Below are positions 19,508-33,614 of a stretch of 64,000 nucleotides of DNA, in pieces (position 1 is the first letter of the stretch; each line of letters opens with the position of its first letter). The position numbers and the translations under genes were made by a program. Origin of the DNA: Anthoceros angustus (taxonomy: Eukaryota > Plantae > Anthocerotophyta); the NCBI GenBank assembly GCA_010909165.1, contig MU008166.1:930001-994000 (forward strand), in the 5' to 3' direction. A model generated the notes under the pieces. It saw only the letters and a program-made list of their open reading frames with translations. It ran no database searches and was not told where the DNA came from.

Positions 19508-21925
19508 TCAAGGGGGGCCTGTAAGCAGTCTTAAGTCGTCCAGTATTCGCTTATATTCATAAAACAAACTGGAGTGCTCACCCGCCAAACCTGTTCGAGA
19601 CACCCTGTTGTTGCCTGACAAATTGTTGCAAGGGCTTCCACCAATTAGAAGGTCAAATTTTCCATATCTACGCTGAAGGTCTACTAGCTTATCCTTTGTC
19701 AAATCCTTCACGTCATGAATGTGATGAACCAGAAGGCCCTTCTGACCTGTGACTTGCCACCAATTAGAAACTACCTGCCTAACCTTATCGTTCAATTCTA
19801 TGCTTACCACCACATTGAGCTTGATGCCATTCTTGTGCAACGCAACCTCAGCACCTCCTATGCCCGCAAATAGAGAGATGACGTTTATCCCTTCGGAGAA
19901 CAAGGGCTTCAATACTGAGAGATGATAAGCAACCGTGTTCACCTGAAAACAACTTCCTAAGCACTTCCATCGGTCGGTTTTATTCACCACACCTCTGGTA
20001 TGATTAGCGTCATACCCCAAAACGACCTCCATCTCTTCAGCACTCATGGGCGAGACTTGATTTGGTCCTGTCCAAACTAAGTTCCATTTCTTCAGTTCTA
20101 TCAATACCTCCTTCCGGAAGTCCTCATCCTCCACAAGTCTAGCTCCGTTTTGTTTGATAGACTCAACAATGGGCTCAACAACAGTGTGGCATGCTGATCT
20201 AGAATCTATGCAATTGAGCTTTCTCCTGGGGTCCCAGGCAGGCCAGTGCTTCGAAGTTTCTGGAAAAAGCTCTTGAATGGTCATAGGAGGCTGAGGAATC
20301 AGTAGCTGTCTTCCCTCTACTGGAAGGTTGTGGACATAGCCTCGTGCCCTTCTGCAGGCCGAGAAGTGCAAAGCATCCACAAACTCTGGCTTGATGCCAT
20401 ACAGCTCATTGGAGATCTTGTCCCATTCGAACTTTGGCATCGTTGCCACATTCTCAAAGTAGAAATACGGAGGTCTAGCCAAATCTTCCGGTAACCTCCG
20501 AGGAACAACAGGCCCACCAGGAACTCCAAACCCTGTTCTCGAATCTTCTCCGAAGGTGTAATGGTCTTCCCTCTGCAGAGTATAAACAGTAGACCTACCA
20601 CCGCGCTGCTTCGTTTTCCTCTGCTTTCTGATCATGCTAAACTCTTCCTCCCAGCCAGGACCTGTTTGCCCCATGTCATAGGAATCCAGATCCTCATCTG
20701 TACCGATGACGTCCGGGTCCCAGTCACGCGCAGAAGCACGTCTCCGACGATTAGAAGTATCTGACTCGTTAAGCTGGTCATCCCCTTCCACTAGTTCCTG
20801 CAATTCCAAAGCTTTCTGCAGGTCCAGTGCTTCCGTGACATCTTTGCAGTCATGCTTCCGTATAGCTTCTTCCAAACGAGGGCTAAGCTGCACCATGCTC
20901 TTAACTTGCTCCACAACCAAGTCCACTCCCTCGGTTCTAGGCTTGCTCGGAGTGTCAGACAGTAAGTAGGCATCCAGCCAGTCCACCACCTTCTCCACAG
21001 GGTCATCAAGTGCATGGTAGCTGACTGCAATGGTGACGACGTCGAAGTCGTAACCCAATTCTACTAGCTGCTCCAACCGGGAATCGACATTACGTTCACC
21101 AGCAGCATCAGCGACATCCTTGACGTCCACGTCCATGTCGCAACTTCTCCCATCCCGATCATCTTCACCACCTCGAGGTTCAGCTTCCTCTCCAGCTGCA
21201 GCTGCATCTTCGACCCCAAGGTTCTCCAAGATCACGTTCGCCACCACCTCTGCTGTCACCTCTCTCCCTGCATTCTCCAAGCTTTCCACAGCTCTTTCCA
21301 CCTGAGCCTCAGAGAACCCTAGCGACGCGAGGTCACACCACCATGCTGGCTTCGAGCATCCTGCTTCGTTACTTCCAAAACGTGTGTCACTATCCGGAGC
21401 ACACCCCGTGTCTCCACCATAGCCTGCCGACTCCTGCTCGCTTATCCCTAACCCCTCCGAAGACTCACCATCCGTTTCCGCTTCAAGCTCCCGGCTCTGC
21501 TGCCTTTCCGCACAGCACATTTCCTCCTCCTTGCAAGAAAAAATGGCAAGCCGCGGGCTCGAAGGAAGGTGGGAGCGGGGACTCGAGGCGCGGGCATCCA
21601 GCAAAGAATTCACGAGTGCACCCAAGGTGACTTCCTCGCCCCGCTTTTCCAAGTCCTCCACAGCTCCCTCCACCTCAGTCTGCGACGCGGGAAGACCAAA
21701 ACACTCCAGATCATGCAACCAGTTCTGCTGCGGCCCTGCAGCCATAGCTGGCACACGGACAGCCTCCTCAATCAACAACGTGGAGCTCCCCTCGGGCTCC
21801 GCCATGCAGGGAACACAAAGATCGAGCTCAGTCTTGCATGATTTCCTGTGTACGTCTCCTTTCTTTAATTGCCCCTGATTTTGTTTCGACGTCCCGCCGC
21901 CGATCGATGGCATGACCGTTGCCAT
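19508..21925 (-). CDS. DRM2: Domains-rearranged DNA (cytosine-5) methyltransferase with UBA-like repeats, in one uninterrupted reading frame
   Basis: Rearranged motif order: YFYFENV precedes SLFAGIGGAEVAL and catalytic GGSPCNNLSGNNR. Three UBA-like helical segments lie N-terminally. The track's first M at 21994 is a GTG; the first in-frame ATG is 21925, so the true start is uncertain. Confidence 0.93.
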   Translation of the reverse strand: MATVMPSIGGGTSKQNQGQLKKGDVHRKSCKTELDLCVPCMAEPEGSSTLLIEEAVRVPAMAAGPQQNWLHDLECFGLPASQTEVEGAVEDLEKRGEEVTLGALVNSLLDARASSPRSHLPSSPRLAIFSCKEEEMCCAERQQSRELEAETDGESSEGLGISEQESAGYGGDTGCAPDSDTRFGSNEAGCSKPAWWCDLASLGFSEAQVERAVESLENAGREVTAEVVANVILENLGVEDAAAAGEEAEPRGGEDDRDGRSCDMDVDVKDVADAAGERNVDSRLEQLVELGYDFDVVTIAVSYHALDDPVEKVVDWLDAYLLSDTPSKPRTEGVDLVVEQVKSMVQLSPRLEEAIRKHDCKDVTEALDLQKALELQELVEGDDQLNESDTSNRRRRASARDWDPDVIGTDEDLDSYDMGQTGPGWEEEFSMIRKQRKTKQRGGRSTVYTLQREDHYTFGEDSRTGFGVPGGPVVPRRLPEDLARPPYFYFENVATMPKFEWDKISNELYGIKPEFVDALHFSACRRARGYVHNLPVEGRQLLIPQPPMTIQELFPETSKHWPAWDPRRKLNCIDSRSACHTVVEPIVESIKQNGARLVEDEDFRKEVLIELKKWNLVWTGPNQVSPMSAEEMEVVLGYDANHTRGVVNKTDRWKCLGSCFQVNTVAYHLSVLKPLFSEGINVISLFAGIGGAEVALHKNGIKLNVVVSIELNDKVRQVVSNWWQVTGQKGLLVHHIHDVKDLTKDKLVDLQRRYGKFDLLIGGSPCNNLSGNNRVSRTGLAGEHSSLFYEYKRILDDLRLLTGPP

Positions 21926-23015
21926 TTGCAGGTTAGGGCTTCCCGATTGTCCAGGGGCAATCGAATCTGCCACTCCTTCACAAGAGGAGGACACTCTCGT
22001 TCACGATTCACTCCTCTGTACAGACCATGCCTGTGGGGGACGTTTTCTCCATGGCCAGGGTGCATCAAACACCAGGGTGTGTGAGGCATTCACTTCCACC
22101 AAGTCCGCGGATAACAACGGCAATTTCCAAACTTGCAAAAATTGGACAACATCTTACGAGGGAATCAGCGTCTTCCACTAAAGGTTTACATTTTCGAACA
22201 GAAAAGGCGAAAAAGAGCCTGTTTACGGCCCGATCTTCACACACAAACAACACCCGATCCAAGCTGCGATGCCAGCCAACTGCAATTCCTCAAACTTGAT
22301 ATGGAATCTTTCAATCTTTCGAGCGCTATAAGTTAGGTGAGATGGTAATACCACCCAGGCCACACGCAGGGCTCCATCTGCACATCCTGGGTTCAGAGAG
22401 GAGAGGTGTTAGAGACCTTACAATGATCCTCATCCAGCGCATATCTACGCAACCTGATGGATTTAGAGCTCGGAATTCACCGATGCAAAGCTCATCATCT
22501 CCCCAAGTTCGGCCACACTCTGAATTAGACAAGAGAGAATACCAGCGTTGGAGGAGCGAGAGCGGCACCTGCGCGCTAGACCTAGGCAATGTCGGCGTCA
22601 TCGAAATCATCCTCGAAGGAATTGAAGAAGTCTGAGTCAGAGGGCTTGTTGTCTGAAGAAGCGTCGCCCATTACGTCAACAGCGTCGCCATCCAGATCCA
22701 CGTCCATGGCCGCTGCCACACTCTGGTCATCCAAATCTTGGCCCATCGGTACTCAAAATGCCTTCATTACGGCTAAGATCTCTCAAGTACTCGAAAGAGC
22801 CAACCGGAAGGGCTTCACAGCTCCCGTAGGTTTCGTCAAATTCGTTGCAATGATACTAAAGAGAATCTGGCACAGCCCTCTACATATGCCGCATACATAC
22901 ATGATTTACAGGGGTCCCAATCGTGGACCTTTGAATGTATGTGTAACCTAGCCTTTGTACACTCGAGAACAACATGTAGTCGAACTGTAAGACGTTGAGG
23001 TGTGAGAAGTAGGGA

Positions 23016-26000
23016 CTATTTCCACACTTTCACTGCCCCATCCCTGCTGCTGGAGATTAGGAGCCGCTGATTTGTTTGAGCCAAGGCAAGGGATGTGATG
23101 CAGTCGCGGTGACACCCTGCTGTATCTGTTGCTGCCGCTACAATGCTGGGTTTCGATGAGTTTTTCACCTTACTACTGGTGCTGCCATCCAAAGGAGGAT
23201 GCTCCTACGGAAGACAACAAAGAGAGAGATCAGCTGAGAATTTTCCCCTAGAAAGTTTTACCATAAGATGTACAGAGATCACGAGTCACCTGAACGACTC
23301 GGACACCTGAGATGACCGTCGTACTGTAGACCTGGGAATCGGGTGCTGTAGGTCCCTTTACTGTTGGCCCACAAACGCAGTAGCTCTTCCCAGGCCTTCA
23401 CAACACCAAGAGAATCAGAAAAAGGAAGGACCAGGAAGAGCAGGTATCACTTTCCTGCTTCAAAAACTTTAACTGTACCTGAGGCGATCCCATAGACGAA
23501 TCCGCAGATCTGTTCCTCCACATATGATGGAGGCACCACCTGAAAGGGGCAGAAGTGCACGAACTCCAGGAAGTTGAGGTGGTGGATCAATGAGCTCCTC
23601 AACTTTGTACCGTTCTTTTGGAGTAGCGATTTGATCTGTACGGAACCGACTTTCTTTCAAAGCGGCAGGAAGCTCATGTGTCTCGGAAGCTGCTGTGTCT
23701 CCTTGCATCTGCAACACCTGCAACCCGACAAATTTTCAAGAACTGGATGGTGATAGACAAAACTACCCACGAACTAATAAATGACACGAAGTCAGTCAGG
23801 CTCTTCCTCACAACAAGGCTCAGAGACTGGGCTGAGACAAGTCACCTGAAGACAATTCCCGTCTTCAGCATTCCATAAAGCCAGTTCGTTCCGTCCTGCT
23901 GCAACATACACCAATGGACGTCTAGAAGGTTTTAACGGATCCCAAGACCAAGGTTGCAGGGGGGACATACACTTGATGAAGCATCCAGAGGGATGGCACC
24001 AAGTATTTACTGGAATCAGGAACCTTAAGTCCCACAGAGTCAGGAAGCCCCTAGATGTTGCAGATACGAGCCAGTTACAGTTGAAGTCGAGCGCAGTTGC
24101 TGTAACATAGCCTTGTGCAGGTTCCACGCTCAATGACCAAGCATCCACCTGTTTTCGCACGTCCCAGAGGTGAATATTATCTTTCAGTGTGCTGTATAGC
24201 AGTAATAGAGTGCCTTCCCCACAAAAGTTCTGCAAAGATGTTACTGGCCCCTCCTGCGATTCTAGCTTCCTGATCTCTGAGAAGCCCGAGTATTTCTCTG
24301 CACTGTTGCCCTCACGAGCAACATAATCTACATTAAATACATGAATCACACCATCACTTGTTGCAGCTGCTACCTTATGGTCACTGCCAAATGTTTGCAC
24401 ATGAAGTACACGCCCAGCTTTACAGCTATATGTCAGTCTTGACCTGAATGAAATATCCCTCTCCAGACGTCGGCAATCCCAAACTTTCACTGTCCCATCA
24501 TCTGATCCACTGAGAAAAAACACATTATCACTAGACACAGCCACTTCATTGACCGCTTGTTGATGTTCTTGCAGATGTGCAATCAGGACTCCTCTTGGTC
24601 GCCAAGAAGTATCCCAGTTAGAACCTTCAAGTTCCCCTCCCCCAAGCGCCTCCATGGTTGGGTCTTGGTCAACCAAAGCATCTGCACTTGGTCCACTCTG
24701 ACTTTGCACAAAAGAATCCAAAGATGCTACAGGCACAGCCTGAATGGATGTGCGTAGCACATTGCCATCCCCATCTCTCCTGTAAGCGTCCTTTGTCACA
24801 TCATACATGAAATGACCTCCATTGTAAACAGATCCAGTCATGGAAACTGAACTTTGGTATGGATCTGCTGGCACCATGGAAGAGTGGGTAGCTCCAATCG
24901 TGGCCCATTGAGATGAAGCCACAGCTAAGGAGCTCCCCATGGGTGTGCCTGCAACAGCTGTCATGAAATAAGGCACATTACCCTGACGTGCACCAAAGAT
25001 TCGGCTCCATTCCTCGTTACTAGATGGGCTTGCATCAAATACAACCGCTTGCCCATCTTGCTTTTTTGGGCCATCTTGCTTTTTCTCATTAACGGAAACC
25101 CAGTACAAGGGGATACCTTCCGATGTACCATCATAGTGTGAATAATAACCTGTTCCCACTCCAGAGGCCAGTCCAAGAGCCGAACTCTGTAGCTTCTCCG
25201 TATTTTCCACCTCCCAATTGTGCATTCTAGTTTGCATAGTGCTTGATAAGTTGCGAATATAGCCTTCCATTGCTTTCAGTTTTTCACCATCCCCCGATTC
25301 AGAGCCTTCCACTTCATCACTAAAGCAACTTGTGAGCCCTTGCAAGGAAGGCAGCTTTGATCCCAAGTTCTTCATACCCCGTGAGTCTGCTGTTGCCGAG
25401 GCAATGTCAGCCTCTTTCCCAAACCGACTTCTTTCCAGTGGCTTGACTTGGCTCTGCGACGGTGACCTCTGCCTACCTTTTCGCTGCTGGACAACTTTGG
25501 TGCACAGCTGCTCAGAAGAATTTCCTTTCCGTTGGTGCACAACTTTGGTGCACAGCTGATCAGAAGGATTTTCTAATAACATAATGTCACTCAACAACCT
25601 GTTAAAGGCCTCTCTTGACATAGGCGGCTTCAAGCAAGGCATAAGAGCTTCCTCTGAGCATAATGAGGCAGGTTCTCTTCGAAGGAAGGGAGATAGAATG
25701 GGAGATAAAAGTGAATAGGCTTCTGCAATATCCAAATTGCAGCTGGTCCCAGCGACAAAAGTAATCGCTGCCTTCCGAACCCACTGGCTTGGGTGACAGA
25801 GAAGTGGAGCTGCCCGTTCTACTGCTTCCAGCAACACACGCTTCCGCAACATTCTATGACAACATAAAGCAGCTAGGCAGTTCAAGGAGTTGACAACGAC
25901 AATCTCTTCAACATCACTCAGAGCCTGTTCTACATAAGGGAGCAGATAAGCCTCTACACTCATTTGGCCTATGAATAAGCACACATGAATGATATGCTCA

Positions 26001-29000
26001 AAGAAAGCAGAACGGAGCTGCTCATCCCGATCATTCAAAAAGGCTGGCAGTATTGGGAGAAGGAAGTCATTGCTCTGTTTCTGGCCAAAAAACTTGCAAA
26101 GTGACCCAACATGTGTCAGGAGTGCCCGCCTGATCGTGGGTGTTTGCTTTTGCCCAATGACCAACTCTTGAATAACTCGAGCTAATGCCTCACGCAACTG
26201 AGAAAGCTCATTCTCAATTTTGCTGGCAGTATGCTGATGAACACTGGGAAGAGGTGGCTTCTCAGTTGTATGGACCCTAAAGGCACGACTCGGGCTGTCT
26301 AGGCCTCCTAAATCACTGATATACTGGGAGTTTTTGAGACACCTATCAGCAGTCTCTGCAATCAGACTGACGTTATCTGAATAGGCTATGCGGACACTTT
26401 CTTCTGGATCATCTGGCAACATGGAAAGAAGTGGGAGGATGTACTCGGGAAAAAGCTTTGCATCACCTGGAGGAAAGCTCGAAACCTTGGACACCACATT
26501 ACAGAGGGTCTGTAGAGCTGCACACCGTACTATAGCTGCTGAATCAGAAAGCAGGGCAGCAACATATGGAATGATTTGTTGCAGTCTGCAATCATCATCA
26601 CAGAATTCCGAGGCATCTTGCAGCAACTGAACAGCCCCTCTCCGTGCCTGTGGAAGCCTAACATTCCTCAGGCAAGAGCATAACAGGGAAGCAATAAGAA
26701 CCATGCCGTCACACCTTAATACTTTCGATCCAGAACCCTGCTCTGGACTTTTTGCAACCACCAATGAATCAATGCTTCCACCTGCTATTGGCATAGACCC
26801 ACTCTTGATTGCACCTTGAACTGGAGTGGGAAGTCGCCTCCTACGTTTCCGTAACCAGCGCCTTCGTCTCAATGTGCAATCAGGCGTACATGCTGCTGTC
26901 CACGTTTGAGAAAGCCCTTGGCGCACTCCCAGTTTTTGTTGAGTTTGTTTCTCACCTTGTGCAGCGGTTGCATAACCTCTTACAGCCTTTTCTAGGTCTT
27001 GTGCAACCACCTTTCGATATCTCCATCCTTCCCTATCAACTCCAACACCTGCAAAAGACAGACATGTCACACAGCACTTGAACTGAGTTCGTTGTAAGGC
27101 AGCAGCTGCTGGAGCATAACAACATACACTTCATACCATTCATTAGCCAGTTTAAGTCAACCTCCCAATCGCCCTCCCACATCCAACCACTCTCTAAAGG
27201 AAGAGTGACGTCGCCCTTTTGCCGCCCGCCTGCACCTTTCACACCACTTTCACTCGACTCTCCAGTTGAGAAGGGCCATTCACTAAACGTACCACCAGGC
27301 TCTCTAACTTGATTCTCGTAGACCTGCATATAATAAAGCACACTCTAAGTGAAGGGCAGTTAAGAACTAGATCCAGCAGTCAGGTGAATACATGCAAAAG
27401 AGTGTCCACATAGACGAGCAGGATCAAGACCTCGCATATTCACCTGCTCAACTATAACCTCCTCCACTGCAAGAGCTGCATCTGCCATTGCAAGTGATGC
27501 TGGTTTTATGCGAACTTGGGATCCTGAGGTCGTGGGTACTTGGACATCAGAGATGACGTGGTCTCCATCCAGGGAAAAAGATTCTTCCACAATCCCCAAG
27601 TTTCGTATCACACCTAGAGGGAGCTTTGCTTCTGAGCCTTTAGTTGGAATACCTGAGAGTGTTATGTTCACGGACCTAGCCCTACCCAGACTCCGTTTAC
27701 TGAATTTATCCAGAACATCATCCCGTTCACCATGCTCGTCTTTGAAGGATCTGACTTGTGAAGGAACACCTGTAGAAGGCAGGCCTACATCACTGGCCAT
27801 CCGCTCATTTCTCAACTGTGCATTTATGTCTGACAGCAGACTCACATGGGAATCCCCTGAGATGGTCTTGGAACGTCCATATCTCCGACCAATTGCACTG
27901 CCATCAGCACCATGCGTACGGTTGGATCCTGCAAAAGCGTGCTGGCCTCCTGGGCCATCGTTCTGACGACCACTAAATATCCTAGCATGTCTTTCTCCTG
28001 TTTGCTTTCTTTCCACTTTACGCTTTGCATCTGCTAACATTTGCTTTCGAATTTCTGGGAACGCACCTTGTGTGACTGCCACCTGTTCATAAGATGCACT
28101 AATAGATTCAATCATCTGGCAGCTCTCAAGTCCATGCTCTGGAAGTGATCAAACGGGCTCCAAGGACATCTACATAGAGGGGCATTTCATGACACTGATG
28201 CCTTACAAATGTGCATTGTAAAGAAGGAGAGCTCACCCTCGTGTCTGGGTCCAGGGGAACTATACAAGAGAAGAAATTGTGCAGAAGTGGTGAGAAATAG
28301 CTTGGGAACAATGTAGGTGCCCAGCTTTCCAGATACTCATGTGCCGACAGACGGGATTCTGGATTCCGCTGTATCATGTGCAAAACCATCTCGCATATTC
28401 CAGAATCAGGAATCTGAAGCAAATTATCCCACCAGTAAGTCGCTCTGCGCAACCTGACATGTATTCACACTCACGCCTTAAGAAAGCATGAGTACAAGAA
28501 AAGCTTTAGTTCACCTTTTCCAGAGAAGGCCTTGGGTCATATTCTCCCCTCCGATACATGAGAAGCTGTGAAAGAGTGAAAATAGCTTGACCTTCAAGGA
28601 AGAGCTCTGCAATTACACACCTATAAATACCCGACAACCAAAGAACCATTACACATAAGTGGTATCAGATTTTTGATCTACGCAGAAATACTTGACTAAC
28701 GTACCGTATCTAAAATCACACAAGCAATCACTTGCTGCTCATGTGCAGACACTTCGACACTATCTACTGGAAACCAGAGGGAATCAAGATGTCGATACCC
28801 AAGTGAGAACACATCCATTGAAGGTTGCAGAGGGCCATCGCCCACCGGAACCTGATCACAAAATCGCTGCAAAGACAAGAAGCACAATTGGCTTAAATAC
28901 AAGGCTGGGCTACAAACTTCTCACTTCACTTTGAAGACGTAGGTAGATATAAGGACGATTTACCTCAGGTGCAAGATAGCAGCGACGGCTGCCACCAGTG

Positions 29001-30093
29001 TCAAAGAAAAATGAGAAGTCTGCAGGATTATCAGCTGGAAGATATGTTGGCTTGAAGCAGGCATAGTCCGCAAGGTAAACCCAGTTCCAGGACGTTACCA
29101 GAACATTCTCACATTTTATGTCACCTGCTCAGGACAACCATTCTCAACAACAATAAATAGATGGCAAAGGTAGCATTATCAGATCACAAGCCTAGCCACT
29201 TGTAAAGGACTCACCGTGACAGACTTTGTGCTCATGGCTCTGCTTCACTGCATGCAGTAGCTGCAAAACCATAGATTCAAATTGAGATCTGGCACAATCC
29301 TTATTTTGACACATCACCATGCTCTATCCTCAATCAAACTCCTGTATCATAATCTCAAGACTGAAACTGAGTGCAAATTCAGGACTTAATCCAAAAATCT
29401 CTCTTCCATGTTCCCAAGACTGAAGGTAGTTTCTCCAGCTGGAGAAACTCACTCAAGCCCACATCATTAGACTCCTGGCAACCTAAATCTCTGGTATATT
29501 TTAACCTGAAATGCCAGCCATTTCTTTTCTATGATGCTCAGGAAAGGGCGTGTGCTCATGCGATCATGGAGATTGCTGTAGAAGTACTGCCGTATGAGGT
29601 AGGCAGCCTTGTCTGTGTCCATCCAATGCTGCCACATAGGAAGCTCAAATTTCAGCAAAAGATGCAAGGAATGAGAAAGCTGATATTAGCTGATCAAGCT
29701 AAGTCACCTGAAAGGGCCAAACATGTGAATGCTTGATATCCTTTAGTTTCTCCTTGATTTCTTTCAGCTTCCGTTCATGAGCCTGAAGGAATGAAAGACG
29801 CAACTGGTTGATCAGCTAGAAAAAATTGCAATACCGTTGAGGTTAGACAGAAACAGGGCATTTCTTCACATGAACCACATATTGACGCAAATCACCTTCA
29901 CATCGGGAAATTCGCCACGCTTGAAGTAGACCTTGACAACAAGCCATCCCTCATCATGCGCACAAACTATGGATTTTAGAAAGCGGCCTCTGCCCAGCGA
30001 TTCCTTCAACACCAAATTTAAAGTGGTTGGCAGATCCTGCAGGTAGTACTCCGAAGCCGATGCCTGGGTTGTGCGGGCTAATTTGTTCCCCAT
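23016..30093 (-). CDS. VPS15: VPS15 / PI3K class III regulatory subunit: kinase - DysF-like insert - HEAT - WD40; multi-exon
   Basis: Starts [18 protein letters not shown] (myristoylation Gly). [41 protein letters not shown] region, [17 protein letters not shown]40, and C-terminus HRDCITSLA...[12 protein letters not shown] (TAG 23016-23018). Confidence 0.96.
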
Positions 30094-30241
30094 CTTTGAT
30101 CTCCAGTCATCTGCTCTGATGGTTAATATGCAAAGCCCTAGTGCAACTCATGCTCTGTGTCTGACACTACATATGGAATGTTACCGAATGAAGCAGCTCG
30201 GAGACTTGTCTTTGTAAGCTGTATTTGTAGTCTTCGAAGAG

Positions 30242-32350
30242 ATGGCTTCCCGGGTGCCCACCTTCCCTTCACGTGTTTCCTCTCGCGAATTGGGGTCTTC
30301 AAGCACCCTCTCACCTGGATCGATTTCTGTGCCTGTTTCTGGAGGAGATTTCGATTCCGACGACACCAAGAAAAAGAGGAGGAGGAAGAGGTTCGCACGG
30401 GTGCCGGGTGACTTATGTGAGGGCTTCTATCTGTGACCGCTCTGTTAACGACAGTTGAGATGCTAAAGTCTAGTCTCACCACGGCTTCCGGATCTGCGCA
30501 GGTTTAGAAAGGAGAAGTTGCGGGGCATGGGGATTGGGAGCTCTTATAATCCTCTTTTGCTTTTGGTTTGTTTCCGTTCAGGTTCCTCATGCCAGACCAG
30601 GTGATAAATCTCTTGGGCAATTGCCAGGGGCAGCTAGTAGCATCTGGTCAATCAGCTGAATTTGCGGATGGGCTCTTGCAGGTGGACGTGTAGACTCTCA
30701 GGACGCGAAGAAGCCTGGCAGTACAAAGTCTAAGCTGAATAATCTGGACATGCCAATGAGAAGGAGAAATGGGACTCTGGAACGTAGGTGTTGGGGGCCG
30801 CAGGGAAGGGGGCGGGGGTGGGGGAAAGGGAGGTGGGGAGCTGTCAGCTAGTTGGCCCTCTTTAGCTGTCTATGACCGTGGTCTCGTATTTGCAGCTTGC
30901 CTGAAGCTCCTTCCTGTTAAAGAACTTGAGAAGCTTTCGTTTCCTCCCCAGACTGGTGATGACACCATCAAACACCTACACTACATGAACTACTATGAGA
31001 ATGAACTATTACAGGTCGACGGGTCTGATGGTCAATCCCTGGTTTTCCACAAAAATAGAAGTACGAATCTCTTTACTGGGAACCTCACAGGTAGAACGAG
31101 AAGCGCGAGCTTCAAGGTCCGTTCGCTGTGCTTGCCCATATATGCGTGTTTGTGCTAGGAGCTTGGAAGGAACTCGAGCTGTCGTGAGGCGTAGCTGATG
31201 TTTGCCCTGTTGCTGTCAGATTGGTGAAACTGTGGCTGTTCATTGTGGGTTCTGCCATGAGCACGGTGGATTTGACATCTCTGCACCAGATAGACAGTTC
31301 CTGGCTAAGTGTGAAGCAGTCGTAATGACTTGCATATTTGGCGGAGGAGATGACCTGTACCAGCCTGTTGGGATGTCCAGTGCTTCTCTTGATAAGGTGT
31401 TGATCTCTAGGTTGCCGACCATTATGTCATCCAGCTCCTGGATCTCGAATTCTAACAGGACAAGTACCTATATGGCAGGTATGCTATGTAGCGTTCTGGG
31501 ATAACGTGACAGTACAAGCTATGCAGGAACGTGGAATATACCCTGACAAAGTGAGCAGGAAAATAGGGCATTGGAGAGCTGTCTTTGTTGACAATCTACC
31601 TTTCTCTGATCAGCGAAAAAATGGAAAGGTTCCAAAGGTTGGTCTTCCCTTCTATGGATGTTCAGTTTTTTGCGTTTAATTCCAGGATTGCAGTGTTTTT
31701 CGTGCCGGCAAATTGCAACAATTCGAATTTTTGTTTCATTCTTCTACAGATGTTGAGTCATCGACTGTTTCCAAACGCCAAGTATTCTGTTTGGGTAGAT
31801 TCAAAATCACAGTTTCGTCGAGATCCTCTGGGAGTGTTTGAAGCCCTTCTCTGGCGGCCACAAGCTACTTTTGCCATTTCTCAGCATGGGGCACGGGATT
31901 GTGTTTATGAAGAAGGAATTGCAATTGTGCAAAAACATAAAGCAACACCTGGGGAGGTTGCAGCTCAACTTGGCCAGTACGAGTCTGAAGGATTGCCAAG
32001 GAAAGCACAGATAGAAGGCCACAAAGGTGAGTCTGAAAGCCTGGCAGCATTTGCTTTGGACAAATCATTCTTGTCGTCTTGAAAATGTCTTCAGTACCTT
32101 CTAAGGACCTGGTTGTGTTGCAGCATTGGCTGAAGCCTCCGTTATCATTCGCCAGCACACACCAAGGACCAATTTGTTTATGTGCTTATGGTTCAACGAG
32201 GTTGCGTTGTTCACTGCCAGAGATCAGCTTAGCTTTGTTTACGTTTTGACCAAGCTACCCATCCCCAACATTAACATGTTTCCTGTGTGCACTCGGAGGG
32301 CTTTGGTGAACAGCCTTGGCCACAAAACCAAAGCAAAGCCCTCACTGTGA
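30242..32350 (+). CDS. DUF616 (TOD1/MUCI70-like glycosyltransferase/ceramidase-like family) protein; 5' exons uncertain
   Basis: VHCGFC, TCIFGGGDDLYQP, CYVAFWD, HRLFPNAKYSVWVDSK, FAISQHGAR, EASVIIRQH, CLWFNEV...RDQLSF. The ATG at 30242 is tentative. Confidence 0.85.
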
Positions 32351-32936: not shown

Positions 32937-33614
32937 CTACATCGGCGTAGCATCCTGCTTGCTAGCTACGACCGGGCCAGACGGACTTTGACCCTGTGAA
33001 CGGGAATAAACCGGATGCACAGGTGCGCCCCCTGCAGGCTCAACATGAACCCATTTGCGGCCAGTAAGCTTGTTCTTGGCGAAGCGAACTTGCCCTGCAG
33101 ACAACGCGTAGAGCGTATGATCCTTGCCCATGCCAACAAAATCTCCTGGATGAAACCTGGTGCCTCTTTGCCTCACAATGATGTTGCCGGGGATCACTCT
33201 CTGCATACCGGTCACAAAATCTCAAAACACTGTCCACCATCGACAGTGGCAGGCCAAAATACACCCTTGGGAGAAGGCGTACCTGGCCGCCGAATTTCTT
33301 CACTCCTAAATACTTCGGCAACGAATCACGCCCATTCTGCGTGGAGCCTCCAGCCTTCTTAGTGGCCCATCTCCTGAAGACGAGACTCAAACCTCCGACC
33401 TCTCCCCCTGGAACGTCTGCAACCGGCAAGGCCGCAAGCTGAGTAACTACGAGGAAGGAACACTCCACCAGTGCTGAAGCTGGATTGAAAAATCCAGCAC
33501 TTATGCAACGGCTGCATTACCTTGGCAAACGGCCTGTCGCAGAGGGGACGGAGACGAGGACAGAGTGACGCGTGACAGCAGGCTGCTCAGGCTGTGCGAC
33601 GCATGCCTTGCCAT
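32937..33614 (-). CDS. RPL27: Mitochondrial-type ribosomal protein bL27, 3 exons, with a Ser/Arg-rich presequence
   Basis: [18 protein letters not shown]...[27 protein letters not shown]...GKDHTLYAL. First exon [16 protein letters not shown] from ATG 33614. Confidence 0.93.

Follow-up and report, generated by a model that had tools for sequence, protein, structure and literature searches.

VPS15 (PIK3R4) is the regulatory subunit of the kinase that makes phosphatidylinositol 3-phosphate (PI3P), and is used in autophagy and vacuolar sorting. It is usually described as an invariant scaffold of kinase, HEAT and WD40 parts, and plant work on it rests on Arabidopsis, a member of a lineage whose VPS15 has no dysferlin (DysF) domain. 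Here we describe a VPS15 gene of the hornwort Anthoceros angustus, on the minus strand of a stretch of 64,000 nucleotides (nt) of contig MU008166.1 (positions 930,001 to 994,000; hereafter the window, in whose numbering all coordinates are given), with an insert between the pseudokinase and the HEAT solenoid which, by profile and by modelled fold, is a genuine DysF domain. Comparison with orthologs implies, at the level of sequence, that this domain is ancestral in VPS15 of the green lineage and was lost in seed plants and others.

DysF domains have been described in several other hosts. The inner DysF domains of dysferlin and myoferlin (PDB 4CAH and 2K2O) give the best profile and structural matches to the VPS15 insert (TM-score, the template modelling score, by target 0.66-0.69; 26-31% identity), and the VEEV-ENQ start and the GW-W---W, D-EGW-Y and RRRRW-R-R motifs are common to both. 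Ferlin DysF domains are, however, nested (inner in outer) in a membrane-anchored host with multiple C2 domains, whereas that of VPS15 is single and stands in a soluble kinase-HEAT-WD40 scaffold; in land plants it also has a loop of about 45 residues between its halves, unlike ferlin DysF. [quoted passage not shown] TECPR1 and VPS15 both carry a single DysF module on autophagy machinery, but the sphingomyelin-site residues differ, and the step served is Atg8 conjugation in TECPR1 and PI3P synthesis in VPS15. The Pex30/Pex24p family (PF06398) provides the only Pfam model that detects the VPS15 insert; only the last third of this profile matches, and most VPS15 inserts score below its gathering threshold. 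Pex30 proteins are reticulon-like membrane proteins of the endoplasmic reticulum, unlike VPS15, and their DysF domain binds phosphatidic acid, the most general DysF lipid specificity reported (PMC12101078). Canonical VPS15/PIK3R4 of yeast, human and seed plants has the same N-myristoylation start, pseudokinase, HEAT and WD40 parts, but no DysF.

The closest published parallel is VPS13M of Viridiplantae, in which an inserted DysF domain was reconstructed as ancestral and as lost in some lineages including Arabidopsis (PMC10683392). Like VPS15, it is a green-lineage membrane-traffic protein with an inserted DysF that appears to be ancestral and then partly lost; its DysF lies inside the VAB domain of another host, and there is no sign here that the DysF domains of VPS13M and VPS15 are closest relatives. 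Neither the DysF fold, nor VPS15, nor the binding of lipids by DysF domains is new in itself, but a literature search on VPS15 and the DysF or Pex24 domain yielded no study of this architecture. The only traces of it are a PF06398 match stored in a database for one Physcomitrium VPS15 isoform, and an entry 'Pkinase+Pex24p' for a Volvox VPS15 candidate, without comment, in a table of a 2012 survey (PMC3407069).

In a protein collection search, the nearest relatives of the gene are bryophyte VPS15 proteins (51-58% identity); the full-length protein has no copy in that collection, its top match being 58% identical. The gene starts at 30093 with MGNKLAR, an N-myristoylation-type start (open reading frame 29866-30093), and its large exon shows Pfam matches to VPS15-like_hel (1.2e-24), HEAT and WD40. 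The features of VPS15, namely the myristoylation start, the pseudokinase, the HEAT/helical solenoid and the C-terminal WD40 part, are all in one gene, and one spliced contig covers all of them. Assembly of its product with VPS34, ATG6 and ATG14/VPS38 is predicted from orthology. Contigs of four public runs were mapped on 24200-30150. Those of X1 are identical to the window, and those of X2 and X15 come from relatives about 3-4% different (about 96-97% identical); the three were taken as RNA from the splicing pattern, the run type itself being only guessed. Each gives one long spliced contig with all introns in the mapped stretch removed (27443-27324, 27136-27049 and eight more in the kinase-coding part). 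Read on the strand of the gene, every intron removed in X1 begins with GT and ends with AG, and two joints in the relatives are shifted by a couple of bases. X18, a DNA run of a relative, is unspliced over the stretch, and its indels are confined to introns, including a 16-nt deletion in the 120-nt intron. The layout of the locus, with the large exon followed down to about 23840, is as follows.

28234-30093, minus strand: 5' part of VPS15, with the start codon and eight short pseudokinase exons (open reading frame; spliced-contig borders; Pkinase in orthologs)
27444-28079, minus strand: linker exon of about 212 codons, with no Pfam match (exon borders from spliced contigs)
27324-27443, minus strand: intron of 120 nt, GT..AG (joint 27321/27442, cut +2, in X1, X2 and X15)
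27137-27323, minus strand: exon of 187 nt for the N-terminal half of DysF, with YENQVRE and the tip loop (translation, spliced contigs, window-free profile)
27049-27136, minus strand: intron of 88 nt, GT..AG, phase 1 (joint 27046/27135, cut +2, in three runs)
26831-27048, minus strand: C-terminal half of DysF, taking up the large exon's first 72 codons, with VDREGWRY, a variable loop and the Arg ladder (translation, window-free profile)
23840-26830, minus strand: rest of the large exon, with a 39-residue linker, the helical/HEAT part (beginning with CDGMVLIAS, 26713) and the first part of the WD40 propeller (Pfam; unbroken contig cover)

Both DysF exons are present in the mature transcript of three species. 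The translation of 27323-27137 begins VYENQVRE, as read in an earlier note on this DNA, and that from 27046 downward continues into the helical/HEAT and WD40 regions of VPS15. A Gly codon is split between the two exons, with one base at the end of the 187-nt exon and two at the start of its neighbour, so that the frame is kept only when both DysF exons are used. The exon for the N-terminal half cannot drop out without a frameshift, and the C-terminal half shares the HEAT exon. Between the window and the relatives, 5 of the 187 bases of the exon for the N-terminal half are different, a divergence not above that of the remaining coding sequence. Alignment and models place the start of the domain about eight codons upstream of the limit given in the earlier note, at VEEVIVEQ (27467-27444, in the linker exon), which aligns with VEEVFENQ of dysferlin and with model strand E4-16 and opens the first of the long strands of DysF. 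The domain is single, non-nested and about 145 residues long, and lies in the linker between pseudokinase and HEAT solenoid.

The Pfam model Pex24p (PF06398) gives 14.1 bits (E 0.025, cut-off 26.8) on the first DysF exon of the window by itself, and Pfam shows no DysF match on the second exon piece or on the linker exon. Among the orthologs, Physcomitrium P0002 scores 29.0, above the 26.8 cut-off, followed by the other Physcomitrium paralog P0001 (22.5), Chlorokybus P0129 (21.0) and Diphasiastrum P0009 (16.5). Two further profiles were compared with the PDB. Profile A1, made of land-plant ortholog inserts and the two window exon pieces as separate rows, matches TECPR1 N-DysF (1.4e-5) and the dysferlin inner DysF (1.7e-4) with both halves aligned. 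The deeper profile A2 (28 rows) matches dysferlin (2.8e-20, profile positions 7-118), myoferlin (2.3e-18) and TECPR1 (9.8e-18) over the whole domain, and nothing besides DysF domains below E 0.6. When the window rows were removed from the A2 alignment and the resulting window-free hidden Markov model (HMM) was run on 1980 six-frame fragments of the 64-kb window, only two fragments matched, and these are the DysF exons (5.4e-19 at positions 9-67 and 1.6e-14 at the adjoining positions 68-118). The match of just these two exons is not due to chance. Moreover, the window has all of the near-invariant columns in 20 VPS15 inserts (L, P, W, W, W, G, W, Y, W, R, R, W, R, R), and its Arg ladder RRRRWLRKR places R at -4, -2, +2 and +4 of the Trp. 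These columns correspond to the Trp/Arg stack of the TECPR1 DysF (W116/118/122/138 with R159/161/165/167), which is also described for ferlins (PMC10476172).

The fold was assessed on the inserts of two orthologs, Physcomitrium P0002 and Chlorokybus P0129, whereas the window was assessed exon by exon. The AlphaFold2 models of these inserts (predicted local distance difference test, pLDDT, 79.7 and 84.0, respectively) both show long N- and C-terminal strands. In a Foldseek search against the PDB, the best 12 matches of the moss model and the best 13 of the Chlorokybus model are all DysF domains with probability 1.00; 4CAH and 8P5P stand on top (TM-score by target up to 0.69), with a gap to noise afterwards. 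The earlier note, made from the sequence alone, had placed a DysF domain between the kinase and HEAT parts of VPS15, encoded in frame by exons 27323-27137 and 27048 onward. Profiles, ortholog folds and gene layout all agree with that placement: both exons match the window-free HMM of VPS15 inserts, A2 matches dysferlin and TECPR1, and X1, X2 and X15 have both exons spliced in at these borders.

To see how the domain is distributed, we searched 1.84 billion representative proteins with profile A1 (HMMER, E up to 0.001), and only 29 proteins matched. Ten of the 29 were scanned for domains: all five proteins longer than 700 residues and three shorter ones are of the VPS15 type, with DysF after the kinase or before HEAT, and two short proteins show no Pfam match. 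Several of the DysF-bearing matches are metagenomic or Logan sequences. Among land plants, the domain is carried by both Physcomitrium VPS15 paralogs (P0001 and P0002), Sphagnum fallax (P0022), S. troendelagicum (P0008) and the lycophyte Diphasiastrum (P0009); among algae, by Chlorokybus atmophyticus, Tetraselmis striata and Volvox reticuliferus, together with Coccomyxa sp. Obi and Chlamydomonas schloesseri, which were found in a region search with the Chlorokybus protein. The insert occupies the same position in VPS15 across five green algae, two mosses, a lycophyte and the window. A word-based search with the Physcomitrium DysF region returned three proteins only and missed Sphagnum and all algae, and is thus too insensitive for questions of distribution.

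A local scan of all fetched proteins separated 23 long VPS15 proteins with DysF (some being isoforms or near-duplicates) from 134 long ones without. The 134 include VPS15 of liverworts (Calypogeia, Marchantia and Riccia), the second Sphagnum paralog, Selaginella, ferns, gymnosperms, all listed angiosperms, fungi and a diatom. No DysF was seen in more than 100 retrieved seed-plant VPS15 proteins, a list that does not hold Arabidopsis itself, and the solved yeast and human VPS15 chains give no match to the DysF profile, as the earlier note had claimed for these two. In land plants without DysF, the flanking KAAAVAM helix and the start of HEAT are kept, with an unrelated short linker between them. 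The domain is not common to all plant VPS15 proteins.

We built a maximum-likelihood tree of 33 VPS15 proteins, keeping an alignment column only if 60% or more of the rows had a residue in it, hence without the insert columns; the search was a quick one and some branches are long. The groups, most of them strongly supported, are chlorophytes, Chlorokybus, mosses, lycophytes, the window with liverworts, and ferns with seed plants. The window groups with liverwort sequences (Shimodaira-Hasegawa-like approximate likelihood ratio test 96) inside the land-plant clade, its exact placement among bryophytes being insecure. DysF-bearing and DysF-less proteins are interleaved as orthologs and do not form two paralog clades. 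Because the VPS15 tree follows the species tree and the insert position is the same throughout, we infer one old gain with repeated losses: DysF would have entered VPS15 once, before chlorophytes and streptophytes parted, and would later have been lost four times or more, in one Sphagnum paralog, in Selaginella, in liverworts and in euphyllophytes. Two Sphagnum VPS15 paralogs are close in the tree (P0012 and P0013 versus P0004 and P0022), one of them without DysF. The DysF-less paralog shows an apparently clean internal deletion between ..HHLLEG and ..EKQLLSE, which may reflect either a loss that is recent or a gene model in which exons were skipped.

Several moss-like sequences bear on the intron that splits the domain. 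The Physcomitrium-like open reading frames P0121, P0123 and P0128 (Logan) depart from VPS15 or carry extra sequence at the point of the window's 88-nt intron. P0123, P0125 and P0128 depart right after the ..DWEVD..SW..SG motif, where P0121 has about 45 extra residues. This pattern suggests that these database entries reflect intron read-through or retention, and that the position of the DysF-splitting intron may be common to mosses and the window. Weaker matches of the VPS15-DysF profile (P0136, P0138, P0145, P0146 and P0149) show the YENQR-type start of other DysF families and no VPS15 context; they might be candidate pointers to the donor family of the VPS15 insert.

Two other explanations concern the insert itself. 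The earlier note had taken the module to be specific to one lineage, and its absence from seed plants, ferns, liverworts, yeast and human would fit a recent gain in the lineage of this plant. Such a gain conflicts with the presence of a homologous insert, identically placed, in VPS15 of five green algae, of two mosses and of a lycophyte, with an insert-free VPS15 tree that follows the species tree, and with an intron position apparently shared with moss; we regard it as very improbable and reject it on the insert distribution and the VPS15 tree. The insert could otherwise be an artefact of annotation or assembly, or a decaying remnant skipped in the mature mRNA, as might be thought from the first exon alone scoring below the Pfam threshold (14.1 bits). 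Yet both exons are found in spliced contigs of three species, loss of the 187-nt exon shifts the frame while the C-terminal half lies within the HEAT exon, and the low divergence of the exon from relatives (5 of 187 bases), with indels only in introns and all core residues intact, is at odds with decay. An artefact or exon skipping is scarcely credible, and the spliced contigs of the three species led us to reject it.

What the domain does in VPS15 can be approached from the ligands of other DysF domains. TECPR1 N-DysF binds sphingomyelin via tip residues including W77, L88, L89, K152, K153 and W154, and according to the same authors other mammalian DysF domains do not share this binding (PMC10476172). 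Pex30-family DysF domains and the human dysferlin inner DysF bind phosphatidic acid, with aromatic and basic residues that lie at one of the domain's ends (PMC12101078). In human class III phosphatidylinositol 3-kinase (PI3KC3) complex 1 (PI3KC3-C1), the VPS15 pseudokinase harbours the N-myristate and acts as a gate for releasing the VPS34 kinase domain onto membranes (bioRxiv 10.1101/2023.09.28.559894). By analogy with other DysF domains, that of VPS15 would be a peripheral membrane-binding finger which, adjoining the pseudokinase, would give the catalytic arm a second contact with the membrane, one that depends on lipid. Its ligand would most plausibly be phosphatidic acid or another anionic lipid, and the extra contact may bias where or when PI3P is made; lineages without the domain presumably rely on other targeting inputs. 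We put the odds that the domain provides such an extra contact at about even.

Two other functions deserve to be weighed against such a contact. The domain might be a TECPR1-like sensor of sphingolipid exposed on damaged endomembranes, recruiting PI3KC3 for repair or Atg8 lipidation, an analogy already drawn in the earlier note. Fold and family are indeed the same as in TECPR1 N-DysF, and the tip positions of L88/L89 are hydrophobic in moss (LL), where the window has F (with a W two residues earlier) and then S. However, in the A1 HMM alignment the sphingomyelin-required W77, K152, K153 and W154 have R, C, T and P as their counterparts in VPS15; because these residues are not conserved, a TECPR1-like sphingomyelin site is not present in VPS15 DysF, and we rejected it on this ground. 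Plants and green algae make glycosyl inositol phosphorylceramides and glucosylceramides, and green plants do not, to our knowledge, make sphingomyelin, which also speaks against such a sensor. So does the report that other DysF domains do not bind sphingomyelin (PMC10476172). The analogy is weak, and a sensor of this kind is improbable. The main rival is that the domain serves protein docking or autoregulation, for example by packing on the pseudokinase or VPS34, or by binding a partner specific to the green lineage. It directly follows the pseudokinase that controls VPS34 release, its conservation is highest in the structural core and in the flanking VEEV..EEV strand and not in the tip loops, and the land-plant loop with its conserved C-x3-C (CTPDC) is no known lipid-binding motif. 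Every tested DysF domain with a defined ligand binds lipid, though, and the present data suggest no partner, so that we consider protein docking rather unlikely.

We therefore return to a DysF domain that is ancestral in green-lineage VPS15, was repeatedly lost and acts as a lipid-dependent membrane contact, which we take as the best joint explanation and as reasonably probable. A number of points weigh against it. Its lipid binding and localisation are predicted by analogy with other DysF domains, and the tip loops, where the lipid site lies in TECPR1 and Pex30, are poorly conserved and partly of low confidence in the models; a protein might be its ligand instead, or its role might be autoinhibitory. 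The fold models rest on orthologs that are 44-58% identical to the window exon pieces. The absences are based on annotated or assembled proteins, in which exons can be missed, and none of the matches could be assigned to the key streptophyte algae (Klebsormidium, Chara, Zygnematophyceae) or to non-green Archaeplastida. Finally, repeated loss without obvious consequence shows that many plants can dispense with the domain.

If the joint explanation is true, a DysF conserved in VPS15 of green algae and of several land-plant lineages that diverged early would be a built-in extra input, for membrane targeting or regulation, to PI3P production, affecting autophagy, vacuolar sorting and possibly membrane repair. 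Tentatively, the ancestral green class III phosphatidylinositol 3-kinase may have had a lipid-reading DysF on VPS15, by which algae, hornworts, mosses and clubmosses would still steer PI3P synthesis according to a lipid cue (phosphatidic acid, or a lipid exposed by stress or damage), whereas seed plants, ferns and liverworts would have been rewired after the loss; this wider picture is possible but doubtful. The parallel with VPS13M hints at a wider, partly lost layer of DysF-based lipid sensing in green-lineage membrane traffic. Chlamydomonas, Physcomitrium and Anthoceros are tractable models with a VPS15 DysF, and Marchantia offers a natural DysF-less comparison.

Some minor features of the locus may be added. 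The C-x3-C motif CTPDC lies at 26890-26876 (minus strand), just before the Arg ladder in the C-terminal half of DysF; it is kept in the window, in mosses and in some algae (CTAEC, CTADC), does not characterise the DysF of dysferlin or of TECPR1, and could be a disulfide, metal or redox site. The linker from HEAT to WD40 in VPS15 contains a tandem duplication of 16 residues (25564-25475, minus strand). Just downstream of VPS15, a single open reading frame of 828 amino acids (19508-21994, minus strand) has a C-terminal end that matches the C-5 cytosine DNA methylase profile at its beginning (at the 5e-14 level), preceded by a long acidic N-terminal region; from its sequence it looks like an exon of a DRM-type (domains-rearranged) methyltransferase. 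Elsewhere in the window, 32937-33215 (minus strand) is an exon encoding ribosomal protein L27 of the organellar type (PF01016, 1.2e-21), and 31585-32082 (plus strand) is an exon of a TOD1/MUCI70 glycosyltransferase-like protein (PF04765, 5e-29).

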